This document shows positions 13,736 to 27,023 of a stretch of 64,000 nt of DNA, piece by piece. The stretch lies in the IMG/VR virus record IMGVR_UViG_3300028275_000006, positions 148,543-212,542 of that record; one strand, given 5' to 3'. Below the pieces are notes generated by a model, which worked only from the letters and a program-made list of their open reading frames with translations, was not told the DNA's origin and did not search any database. How positions within the stretch are numbered: position 1 is the stretch's first letter; the number at the start of each line of letters is the position of its first letter. The position numbers and the translations under genes were made by a program.

Positions 13736-13811
13736 TGGTGCCCCTTGTCCGACTCGAACAGACCACCTACTGATTACAAATCAGTTGCTCTACCAGATGA
13801 GCTAAAGGGGC
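13736..13811 (-). tRNA. trnT: tRNA-Thr(UGU), CCA encoded
   Basis: GCCCCTT acceptor/AAGGGGC-ACCA; D arm AGCTCATCTGGTAGAGC; anticodon stem ACTGA-TTTGTAA-TCAGT; T loop TTCGAGT. Confidence 0.95.
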
Positions 13812-23941: not shown

Positions 23942-23970
23942 AGTATAACACCACCCGAAGGTGGTGTCAA
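23942..23970 (-). promoter_or_regulatory. sigma70 promoter whose spacer is a UUCG hairpin (overlapping terminator)
   Basis: TTGACA-CCACCTTCGGGTGGTGT(17)-TATACT; ACACCACC-TTCG-GGTGGTGT. Confidence 0.75.
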
Positions 23971-24290: not shown

Positions 24291-24856
24291 ATTTTGGTTT
24301 CCTTGCCTTTATAAAAAATGTGTTGTCCAATTTTGCCTATTTTTTCCAAATTCCATCTTGGGTTGACGTAGGAGGCATGATAGTATAAAGCATCTTTGAG
24401 AACGTCCAATCTGAAATTCTCAAGTAAAACCTTCTTAGCAACTTCGTAACTTTCATTATAAGCCTCCTTGTTTACAGGTTTAGTTTTTGCCGCAGAGTCA
24501 CATGCCCATGAAAATTGGCACACAACTTTTTCCATAATTACGTTCTTTTGGTAAACGACACCGCAGACATCTTGTCCAAATTTGCCTGATGCAACACGGT
24601 TCATTGTTACTTGGGCAACAGCAACCTTACCTTCGAATGGCTCATAACCTGCTTCGCGATAAATGTTGATTGCCAAACAATCTAATTGACGCTCTCGTGT
24701 CTTGATAGACACTACGTCCTGTGAGTATAGCCCGCCTCGTTCACGCAATGACTGAAACTTTGTAGTCGTTACAGTTTGAACCAAAACGGCAACCATAACT
24801 AATCCTAAAAAATAGGATACTAATCTAAATGACTTTTCCATAAGTCCTCCTTTCAC
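24287..24856 (-). CDS. cell wall hydrolase, SleB/Hydrolase_2 family (likely start 24841)
   Basis: CLAINIYREAGYEP, AVAQVTMNRV, VCGVVYQ, CQFSW, ALYYHA, IGQHIFY. Confidence 0.9.
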   Translation of the reverse strand: MKGGLMEKSFRLVSYFLGLVMVAVLVQTVTTTKFQSLRERGGLYSQDVVSIKTRERQLDCLAINIYREAGYEPFEGKVAVAQVTMNRVASGKFGQDVCGVVYQKNVIMEKVVCQFSWACDSAAKTKPVNKEAYNESYEVAKKVLLENFRLDVLKDALYYHASYVNPRWNLEKIGKIGQHIFYKGKETKI

Positions 24857-24859
24857 TTA

Positions 24860-25110
24860 GTGTTATTTTGGGCATAATATTGCACCGCAACAACATTACA
24901 TTAAGGGAGTTAACTTCACGAGGCTCAATTAAAGAACCCTGGGTTCGTGTAGTTGTCTCCATTGGACGCACAATCTCATAACTTGTGTGCCTTTGGCGAA
25001 CTTGACCGCCCGAATCTCACGGGTTTCCAATTGGCCAAGACTCGCAGGATTGTTTCTGCTTGTGACATACTTTAATCCAACTATCTTAGTTTCTTTGCGA
25101 AACGTACAAA
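24860..25110 (-). ncRNA. candidate structured leader RNA upstream of the cell wall hydrolase
   Basis: About 290-nt gap with several stems (GCAG/CTGC, CCCG/CGGG, GGCG/CGCC, GCACA/TGTGC, CACGA/TCGTG, GGAG..AACT/AGTT..CTCC). Confidence 0.45.
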
Positions 25111-25150
25111 TATATAGTTCATAATTCCAAAATCACTAGTTAAATAGGCC

Positions 25151-25552
25151 CTATCTTCTCATTTTGGAGATTTCTACGGCTTCTTCATTACTAAAAATTG
25201 GAACTGCATTACTCTTGTGCATAGTACCGATGCCTTTGATCATTGTGCCTGTATAAACTTTATCTGGTGCTTTTAAACAAGGACCGCCAGTAAATGGTAA
25301 ACTAGCAATCTTTGGTGTTTCTCTAACGAATGGCTTGTTGACTACCGGATTCATCGTCGGTGCCGCTAGTCCACGCTTACGTTTTTTATCTTCGGCTTCG
25401 ATGGCCCACTTCTTTTGAAGTGCCTTCCAACTTTCGTCTAACTCTCTAGCCTTTTTGGCATGTTCAGCAGAACGAAACTTTTGTTTGCCTTTCTTTTTGC
25501 CAGTGGTACTAAGCCACGGGCCTTCTAAGTGCATACTCAAAGTTACCTCCAA
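25151..25552 (-). CDS. conserved T4-like phage hypothetical protein
   Basis: C-terminal VYTGTMIKGIGTMHKSNAVP motif recalled from T4-like phages. Confidence 0.7.
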   Translation of the reverse strand: MEVTLSMHLEGPWLSTTGKKKGKQKFRSAEHAKKARELDESWKALQKKWAIEAEDKKRKRGLAAPTMNPVVNKPFVRETPKIASLPFTGGPCLKAPDKVYTGTMIKGIGTMHKSNAVPIFSNEEAVEISKMRR

Positions 25553-25571: not shown

Positions 25572-25600
25572 ATTATATAACAACTTTTGGTAACTGTCAA
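25572..25600 (-). promoter_or_regulatory. consensus sigma70 promoter
   Basis: TTGACA-17-TATAAT. Confidence 0.8.
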
Positions 25601-25610
25601 GTGTTTTGGT

Positions 25611-25931
25611 TTATACTCGAAATGACTCGCCACAGCCACAACGGTCACGTTCATTTGGATTGGTAAAGTCAAATCCTTCGTTAAGACCTTTCTTTACCCA
25701 TTCAACTTGTACACCGTCCAGGTATGCTAGACTTTTTGGATCAACAAATACGTGTACACCGTGACTAACAAAACTCATATCTTCTTTTGTGGGCTCGTCA
25801 ACAAATTCAATCATATAAGCCATTCCACTACAGCCTGTAGTTTTAACACCTAATCGAATGCCTAGCCCTTTGCCCCTACGGTCTAGTGTAATCTTTACTC
25901 GCTCTGCGGCTTTCTCAGACAGTGATATCAT
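25611..25931 (-). CDS. iscA: A-type Fe-S carrier IscA
   Basis: [25 protein letters not shown]. Confidence 0.93.
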
Positions 25932-26304
25932 TTTTTGCCTTGTAGTCTGCTACTGCGGCTTTGATAGCATCTTCCGCAAGAATTGAACAATGGATTTTAA
26001 CGGGTGGAAGTGCAAGTTCTTCGGCAATCGCGCTGTTCTTAATCTCTCCCGCTTGATCCAACGTTTTTCCTTTGAGCCACTCGGTGACCAACGATGAACT
26101 AGCAATAGCACTTCCGCATCCGTATGTCTTGAATTTCGCATCCTCAATAATGCCCTCGTTATTAACTTTAATTTGTAACTTCATCACGTCGCCGCAAGCA
26201 GGTGCTCCCACCATGCCTGTGCCAACGCCTTCCTCGTCTTTAGGGAAACTACCTACGTTGCGAGGATTTTCGTAGTGATCTATAACTCTATCGGAATAAG
26301 CCAT
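25915..26304 (-). CDS. iscU: Fe-S scaffold IscU
   Basis: [37 protein letters not shown]. Confidence 0.96.
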
Positions 26305-26313
26305 TTAATCTCC

Positions 26314-26619
26314 TTAAACTGAAAACGAACTTCCACATCCACAAGTTGTTTGTGCATTTGGATTTTCAATATTAAAACTAGAGCCCATTAAGTCATCGAT
26401 AAAGTCGACTTTGGCTCCTTGCAAATAGTTCATGCTCATTGAATCTATTAATATTCTACCAAATTCAAAGTCGTCTTCTTCTTTGTTTTTTGCAAAATCG
26501 AACACGTAATTAAATCCCGAACATCCTCCACCTTCTATTGCAATTCTAAGGTATTTTTCTTTGCTTTCATCCAGCACCATTTGAATTTCTTTTTCAGCGG
26601 TTTCTGTTATTGTAATCAT
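26314..26619 (-). CDS. erpA: A-type Fe-S carrier ErpA/HesB family
   Basis: GGGCSGFNY, NPNAQTTCGCGSSF. Confidence 0.85.
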   Translation of the reverse strand: MITITETAEKEIQMVLDESKEKYLRIAIEGGGCSGFNYVFDFAKNKEEDDFEFGRILIDSMSMNYLQGAKVDFIDDLMGSSFNIENPNAQTTCGCGSSFSV

Positions 26620-26705
26620 GTCGTGTCTCCGTTGTAGTAATATTTATCGCACAATTATCGTAGTTTAGTATTATTTTTGGTAGTTGTCAACCGATAAATA
26701 TGAAT

Positions 26706-27023
26706 ATGCCAGCACTAGCAAGATTAACAGATTTGGGAGAAGGAAAATGTCCTTTGCACTCCCCTAGCCCACCGGTAGATTATACTACCACACACATTGC
26801 CGGATGCAGTACTGTGTTTACAAACAACCTAGCACAACTAGTAGCCACTAGAGATCCTGGCGAACAATCCTGCGGACATACTAGCCAAACACTTACTGGA
26901 TCTGCTACTGTGTTTGCAGAAAACTTGCCTGTGCATCGTATTGGAGATACAGGCCTTGGACAAGGCGGAGATACATATACAACTATCACCGGAAGTTCTA
27001 ATGTGTTTAATGACGGAGCGTAA
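26706..27023 (+). CDS. PAAR-repeat spike tip protein (T4 gp5.4-like); likely start 26706
   Basis: PALARLTD, GCSTVFTN, CGH, GSATVFAENLPVHRIGD, GSSNVF. Confidence 0.85.
   Translation: MPALARLTDLGEGKCPLHSPSPPVDYTTTHIAGCSTVFTNNLAQLVATRDPGEQSCGHTSQTLTGSATVFAENLPVHRIGDTGLGQGGDTYTTITGSSNVFNDGA

Follow-up and report, generated by a model that had tools for sequence, protein, structure and literature searches.

Several described systems place a structured RNA near a gene in a way that bears on the locus analyzed here. Translational riboswitches control genes by sequestering the Shine-Dalgarno (SD) sequence, and c-di-AMP riboswitches (the ydaO-yuaA motif, Rfam RF00379) precede cell wall hydrolase genes and contain a GGAG/CUCC helix. 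In phage T4, a simple hairpin in the lysozyme (gene e) mRNA is reported to hide the ribosome binding site and block translation of early transcripts (McPheeters et al. 1986), while in lambdoid phages the nut (boxA/boxB) sites recognized by N protein and the put RNAs of HK022 act in cis on phage transcripts. Larger phage-associated noncoding RNAs such as GOLLD and ROOL are highly structured, of unknown function, and abundant in freshwater metagenomes. Here, we characterize a roughly 250-nt structured RNA that lies directly 5' of an endolysin gene in a jumbo phage, matches no catalogued RNA family, is conserved in over a hundred related freshwater phages, and probably controls when the lysis gene is translated, although this function is inferred.

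The analyzed stretch of DNA (the window) comprises 64,000 nt, bases 148543 to 212542 of a 212.5-kb IMG/VR virus record (IMGVR_UViG_3300028275_000006) that has about 40% G+C and is estimated by CheckV to be 55% complete. All genes around the element are on the minus strand. The downstream gene (24841-24287) encodes a 184-aa Hydrolase_2/SleB-type cell wall hydrolase with an N-terminal hydrophobic segment (Pfam PF07486, E = 1.4e-26, together with PHROG endolysin families) and is followed by a 100-aa open reading frame (24290-23988) with three predicted membrane-spanning segments, which we infer to be holin-like, and then by an intrinsic-terminator-like hairpin at 23969-23946. The upstream gene, here termed up (25534-25151), encodes a 127-aa basic protein of unknown function (phrog_27048) and is preceded by a sigma-70-type promoter, TTGACA-17-TATAAT (25600-25572), that matches the consensus at 12 of 12 positions; a match to this promoter pattern is present in 75 of 93 distinct relatives. 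The up reading frame stops at 25151 and the hydrolase reading frame opens at a GTG at 24856, but its real start is the ATG at 24841-24839 behind AAAGGAGG, so that the gap between the two genes is 294 nt to the GTG and 309 nt to the ATG.

The initial annotation had described a noncoding gap of about 290 nt before a SleB-like hydrolase gene in a genome where most genes overlap, with at least six local stems, a closing GGAG-AC-AACT/AGTT-AA-CTCC helix, and a 30-codon reading frame with a weak SD, and this observation is confirmed. In the closing helix, GGAG at 24960-24957 pairs with CUCC at 24909-24906 and AACU at 24954-24951 pairs with AGUU at 24915-24912; the 30-codon reading frame (MSQAETILRV...) is at 25068-24976, though without an SD in front of it; and the local stems are real, with comparative analysis giving seven hairpins. 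The statement that most genes overlap is roughly true for this window, but the element is preceded by about 45 nt of variable spacer, and while the whole element runs from the ACG at 25105 through the SD at 24852-24846, the structured part itself is 25105-24861. The single-sequence fold has a z score of -2.36.

To assess how widely the element is conserved, we used the hydrolase protein to retrieve 304 relatives in viral contigs and kept the best 80. In nearly all of these loci the up homolog ends about 290 to 315 nt before the hydrolase start, and gap length and sequence are conserved in 79 of the 80, with spacers that align in long invariant blocks. A scan with a 23-nt motif from the 5' end of the element recovered at least 119 viral contigs, and in total we identified 85 distinct full-length versions. 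An HMM search, and later a covariance model, matched the element in every related locus, with one copy per locus that lies directly 5' of the hydrolase gene wherever that flank was included, with one exception described below. The element is single copy in its own genome and in five other large records, including a 353-kb record that is 98% complete; the carriers are therefore jumbo phages. A search of one genome for each of 185,579 bacterial and archaeal species recovered the most conserved block only once, on a 4.3-kb contig of a Crocinitomicaceae MAG that carries the same gene arrangement and is thus probably a phage contig. Near-identical DNA was present in 24 riverine runs, 6 of which were metatranscriptomes, but these are represented only by contigs that break inside the element because strains share its conserved words, and they gave no information on transcript start, end, strand, or level. 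Across 71 relatives the leader is 76% identical to the copy in the window, compared with 74% and 73% for the hydrolase and up coding sequences, respectively, indicating that it is at least as conserved at the nucleotide level as its neighbors. A blastn search of the 2-kb region against cultured phages found nothing relevant, cultured relatives of the up protein (PhiW-14 and ACP17) have no comparable gap, and a search with the hydrolase of L084, a divergent locus in our set, returned only its own contig. A looser pattern, GAAACCCG...CGGG...CAAAGR, was also used to scan metagenomes but lacked specificity, with only 3 of 120 rows representing true elements.

The apparent exceptions to this arrangement are informative. 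Where the spacer is about 780 nt, an HNH homing endonuclease gene has been inserted between up and the element, which stays attached to the hydrolase gene. In L099/L125, another relative, an IS200/IS605 insertion (TnpA plus TnpB) sits between the element and the hydrolase gene. One further relative, L070, has the same SD and hydrolase behind a different upstream gene and lacks both the element and up, although up is upstream of the leader in all other hydrolase loci whose upstream flank was included. The leader is therefore not indispensable for the gene.

From an alignment of 84 distinct full-length versions, in which 110 of 269 positions are invariant, we derived a fold of seven hairpins (P1, P2, P3, P3b, P4, P6, and P7). 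P1 (25103-25089) is a 5-bp hairpin, GUUUC/GAAAC, with a GNRA-like GCAAA loop (variants GCAA, GUAA, and AAAAA); 99.8% of its alignment cells are paired, but it is nearly invariant and so shows no covariation. It is followed by a nearly invariant single-stranded junction, J1/2 (25088-25079), UAAGAUAGU(W), which could alternatively pair with GUCUUGG in the 5' strand of P3, though only through invariant bases. P2 (25078-25047) has a 5-bp stem (GGAUU/AAUCC in the window) and a variable loop of 20 to 30 nt, and 4 of its 5 pairs show changes on both sides, for example AU/GC/GU and UA/AU/CG. P3 (25045-24996) is a long helix, GCGAG[U]CUUGGCC/GGUCAAG-UUCGC (3' strand GGUCAAGUUCGC), that encloses the A-rich internal loop AAUUGGAAA and the invariant P3b stem (25023-25009; CCCG/CGGG, loop UGAGAUU). 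P4 (24991-24964) is an 8- to 9-bp hairpin, GGCACACAA/UUGUGCGUCC, with the conserved loop GUUAUGAG, in which six pairs show changes on both sides (ACAA/UUGU, AUGA/UCAU, ACUG/CAGU, GGUAACAGA/UCUGUUGCU, and others). P6 (24960-24906) is an irregular 18-bp hairpin of four stacked segments, P6 (GGAG/CUCC), P6a (AACU/AGUU), P6b (CACG/CGUG), and P6c (GGGUUC/GAGCCU), with the internal loop AACCCA; 99% of its cells are paired and it is mostly invariant. After a nearly invariant single-stranded AAUGUAA (J6/7, 24902-24896), P7 (24895-24861; UGUUGUU.../...AAUAACA) varies in sequence and length, with changes on both sides in 5 of 6 inner pairs and no U-tract after it.

For P1, P2, P4, P6, and P7 together, 95.0% of cells form standard pairs compared with 86.9% in shuffled alignments, and 15 pairs and 341 cells changed on both sides; the covariation score is 0.254 against 0.103, with 0 of 500 shuffles as good, and sliding the partners by 1 to 3 columns lowers the score to 0.058 or less. 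Because the covariance-model alignment retained a one-column offset of the second clade in P3 and P3b, we judged those helices by anchored extraction and duplex folding rather than by column counts. P3 has an almost invariant 5' strand, and its eight 3'-strand variants all remain complementary, keeping 10 to 12 bp at -11 to -15 kcal/mol in all 19 variant combinations; these one-sided changes are consistent with pairing but are not compensatory. Invariant G:U and U:G pairs in P6c would be A-C mismatches on the opposite strand, which shows that the RNA is read from the gene strand. With 24 nt of coding sequence added, the minimum-free-energy fold of the window's copy reproduces P2, P3, P3b, P4, P6, and P7. 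Four other candidate long-range pairings (CUAAGAU/GUCUUGG, GUUUC with a second GAAAC, AUAGU/GUUAU, and UAUAU/AUGUA) involve only invariant bases and thus have no covariation support, and a local hairpin flagged as terminator-like, GAACC-CAG-GGUUC, was rejected because it exists in only one clade.

The analysis further supports a pseudoknot between the P3b loop (UGAGAU, 25019-25014) and the P6 internal loop (24945-24940), which change together: UGAGAUU occurs with AACCCA or UAUGUCA in the first main clade, UAUUUU with AAAGUA in the second main clade, UUAUUU with AACUAA in L084, AUUUUU with AAAA in the relative L054, and UGAGAAU with AUUUUA in the relative L200. Cognate loop partners pair better than all but 2 of 120 permutations, and on the covariance-model alignment the six proposed pairs are 82.3% paired against 64.5% in shuffles, with covariation of 0.383 against 0.135 and 0 of 500 shuffles as good. 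Most covariation in P3 and the pseudoknot separates the two main clades, and the number of independent events is therefore small; even so, the three rare variants independently keep the pairing.

An invariant CUCCCUU (24909-24903) at the base of P6 is complementary to the SD, AAGGAGG (24852-24846), which, like the ATG start codon, is conserved in all loci including L070. The CUCC of this segment can pair either with the upstream GGAG (24960-24957), closing P6, or with the SD 55 nt downstream across P7, so that two GGAG copies compete for one CUCC; RNAalifold pairs CUCCCUU with the SD. Three versions of the comparative fold, with the SD free, with CCUU:AAGG formed, and with CUCC paired to the GGAG of the SD, have predicted energies of -55.1, -54.8, and -54.2 kcal/mol, respectively, and over 80 homologs the predicted probability that the SD is paired averages 0.49 (10 to 90% range, 0.08 to 0.87). 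No base in the GGAG, CUCCCUU, or SD segments varies informatively, however, and hence neither pairing is backed by covariation. No terminator was predicted between P7 and the SD, so the fold should be part of the endolysin mRNA, although this rests on position and sequence rather than on mapped transcript ends. Upstream of the element, 6 nt before the ACG that opens it, a conserved CTATAT box (25117-25112; TATAT invariant) stands amid variable flanks in the spacer alignment and may be either a -10-like promoter element or part of the RNA; it is not enriched elsewhere in the window, which gives no support to its being a general phage promoter, and no sigma-70 promoter or terminator was predicted in the spacer.

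Taken together, we interpret the element as a new family of structured RNA that forms the 5' leader of a lysis operon comprising the endolysin gene and the 100-aa membrane protein candidate. The chain of hairpins, the pseudoknot that ties P3b to P6 in a compact fold, and the invariance of the junctions and loops are what the analysis demonstrates, and we consider it very likely that this is a conserved structured RNA; the gating of translation initiation, the switching between two states, and the binding of any signal by the RNA are inferences, and we regard the gating of endolysin translation through competition for the SD as about as likely as not. In this view, pairing of CUCCCUU with the upstream GGAG would close P6 and leave the SD free, with translation on, whereas pairing with the SD would turn translation off, and an as yet unidentified signal that stabilizes the tertiary fold would shift this nearly isoenergetic balance and so set when, or how much, endolysin is made. 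The signal could be a small molecule, as in a riboswitch, or a phage or host factor such as the adjacent basic up protein; the element occurs in only one gene context, which offers no clue to a ligand. Fixed synteny in a set of related phages can also mimic a functional link. A possible but tentative extension is that this is a new riboswitch class carried by jumbo phages, in which the pseudoknotted fold would bind a host- or phage-made metabolite, such as a nucleotide signal, a cell wall precursor, or a polyamine, and thereby free or hide the endolysin ribosome binding site, so that the phage would time lysis by reading the chemical state of the infected cell. The earlier proposal of an undescribed cis-regulatory RNA, riboswitch variant, or leader-peptide attenuator timing a muralytic gene is thus partly supported: the RNA is undescribed, conserved, and structured, lies in the leader position of an endolysin gene, and carries an anti-SD/SD arrangement that fits cis-regulation, but neither a c-di-AMP riboswitch variant nor a leader peptide is supported.

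Other explanations deserve consideration alongside this one. The element could be a stand-alone noncoding RNA of the phage, such as an RNP component, ribozyme, decoy, or anti-defense RNA, that merely sits upstream of the endolysin gene because gene order is fixed in this phage group. Its size and complexity resemble those of large noncoding RNAs more than typical translational operators, it is present once per genome, it survives separated from the gene in L099/L125, and L070 does without it; but there is no terminator or other 3'-end signal between P7 and the SD, the element ends a fixed short distance before the SD, it carries the invariant anti-SD-like segment, and inserted HNH genes landed upstream of it, and we therefore consider this reading unlikely, albeit not negligible. 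Somewhat less likely still is that the RNA is the target of a phage protein rather than of a metabolite, with the adjacent up protein binding it, for example at the boxB-like hairpin P1, with up acting as a translational repressor or activator or as a lambda N-like processive antiterminator and the RNA serving as an enlarged nut-like site. Consistent with this, up is the first gene behind a conserved sigma-70-type promoter and the RNA follows it, as in the lambda pR-cro-nutR layout; up and the RNA are both absent in L070; a terminator-like hairpin follows the two-gene lysis unit; P1 has the boxB shape of a 5-bp stem with a GNRA-like pentaloop, though this shape is not specific to boxB; and up is small, lysine/arginine rich, and apparently largely disordered (AlphaFold model of low confidence, pLDDT 64.6, pTM 0.27). 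Its nearest named look-alikes by language-model features are lambda N-type antiterminators, with scores of 0.81 to 0.83, but scores below 0.9 are leads only and shuffled proteins reach 0.8 a third of the time. In contrast, no Pfam N-family hit (N_peptide or N36) was found in any of 28 up homologs even at E<=10, Pfam and NCBIfam searches gave nothing for up, its conserved N- and C-terminal motifs are unlike those of N proteins, homologs in the Delftia phage PhiW-14 group have no such RNA next to them, nut and put sites are far smaller, and no boxA was identified.

Two further readings are very unlikely. Although known c-di-AMP riboswitches precede cell wall hydrolase genes and a GGAG/CUCC helix is present here, no Rfam 15 family reached its gathering score in the whole window apart from one tRNA (13739-13811), and a search of the 601-nt region (24700-25300) at E<=10 with permissive filters returned only three chance-level hits (E 0.9 to 2.5; a snoRNA, a plastid intron, and a lncRNA), none of them a riboswitch, which argues against membership in this or another known family; the chain of seven hairpins also shows no pseudo-two-fold symmetry. 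Nor does conservation reflect coding of a small protein or leader peptide, by the 30-codon reading frame or another frame. The ATG at 25068 is present in 51 of 84 versions, and the P2 loop that contains it is conserved in that subset, but it is absent in the other 33, reading frame length ranges from 13 to 71 codons, 1- and 2-nt indels are scattered through conserved blocks and interrupt every frame, and substitutions are compensatory in stems rather than periodic in threes. Full-text literature searches found no description of such an element.

These findings have several implications. Phage lysis timing is usually explained by holin protein clocks and transcription programs, and a large, strongly conserved RNA fold on the endolysin ribosome binding site would add a checkpoint at the RNA level; if responsive to a ligand, it would be the first riboswitch-type control of a lysis gene. 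Whatever its function, this orphan RNA, which is abundant in river and lake viromes and present in their metatranscriptome assemblies, is now well delimited by an alignment of 85 or more distinct versions, a secondary structure with a pseudoknot, and a covariance model suitable for RNA family databases.

Compared with described systems, the predicted mode of action is closest to that of SD-sequestering riboswitches, with which the element shares a conserved multihelix, aptamer-like fold with a pseudoknot and invariant junctions, a position directly 5' of a gene, and an anti-SD segment predicted to be shared between a helix of the fold and the ribosome binding site; it differs in matching no known class, in being larger than most riboswitches, in lacking an enclosing P1 helix, and in its restriction to one phage group and one gene context. 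The c-di-AMP riboswitch has a similar genomic position and GGAG/CUCC helix but a different helix layout. The nut and put elements likewise are cis-acting RNAs in phage transcripts, and a 5-bp hairpin with a GNRA-like pentaloop following a small early gene, next to a gene for a small basic protein, is common to lambda and this locus, but those elements are only 15 to 70 nt. GOLLD and ROOL are similarly phage borne and structured but are 500 to 800 nt, typically lie near tRNA genes, and are not tied to the SD of a downstream gene; neither matches here. In its biological role the element most resembles the T4 lysozyme mRNA hairpin, in that it would control a phage endolysin at translation initiation through RNA structure that hides the ribosome binding site, and the unit may likewise be read from an early sigma-70-type promoter; however, T4 uses one simple hairpin that is bypassed by a late promoter inside it, whereas the element here is a 250-nt conserved tertiary fold for which no internal promoter has been shown. 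We therefore consider it a distinct family among the structured leader RNAs presumed to act in cis, unusual for its size, its pseudoknotted fold, and its position on a phage lysis operon.

A perfect sigma-70-type promoter (TTGACA-17-TATAAT; window 25572-25600, minus strand) lies in front of the "up" gene, which precedes the structured leader of the endolysin gene. A match to this pattern was found at the matching place in the related loci L002 to L199, in 75 of 93 distinct relatives and often just after a terminator hairpin, suggesting an early, host-polymerase-driven unit composed of up, the leader, the endolysin gene, and the gene for a 100-aa membrane protein. A strong, terminator-like hairpin followed by a U-run lies after the 100-aa membrane-protein gene (window 23942-23970, minus strand); it overlaps a promoter-like TTGACA-17-TATACT, so a unit boundary is likely here. 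Within the leader, the invariant junction at window 24896-24905 (minus strand) reads UUAAUGUAAUGU, which is a tandem UAAUG and contains a start-stop pair (AUG UAA); a few relatives lack the AUG or the stop.

Comparison of related loci showed that this arrangement has been interrupted by insertions in some relatives. In the related loci L040 (2201-2710) and L113 (4921-5346), HNH-type homing-endonuclease genes are inserted between up and the leader, and in L040 the start of the inserted gene overlaps the up stop codon; these insertions explain the roughly 780-nt spacers in several loci. In L099 (3883-6451), and also in L125, an IS200/IS605-type element with a 418-aa TnpB-like ORF and a 132-aa TnpA-like ORF is inserted between the leader and the hydrolase (endolysin) gene, with the insertion point just after the 5' part of hairpin P7 of the leader. 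In another relative, L070 (2452-3549), the hydrolase gene keeps the same Shine-Dalgarno sequence and start codon but follows an unrelated 172-aa gene, and both the leader and the up gene are missing. The only hit among 185,579 species genomes was L200 (accession no. JBDNIA010000258.1), a short contig of 4.3 kb binned into a Crocinitomicaceae MAG that carries the up, leader, and hydrolase arrangement; it is probably a phage contig rather than a clue to the host.

Other features encoded in the window include three iron-sulfur cluster assembly genes in a row (window 25611-26619, minus strand), comprising an IscA/HesB-like gene, a NifU/IscU-like gene, and a second IscA-like gene. A tRNA gene (Rfam, 64.6 bits; window 13739-13811, minus strand) and a PAAR-motif protein gene (window 26700-27023, plus strand) are also present. 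We also compared the protein encoded by up (window 25154-25534, minus strand) to named proteins by language-model features; although the best scores, 0.81 to 0.83, fall below the level at which such hits are reliable and Pfam does not confirm the match, the nearest named look-alikes recovered by this comparison were lambda N-type antitermination proteins.
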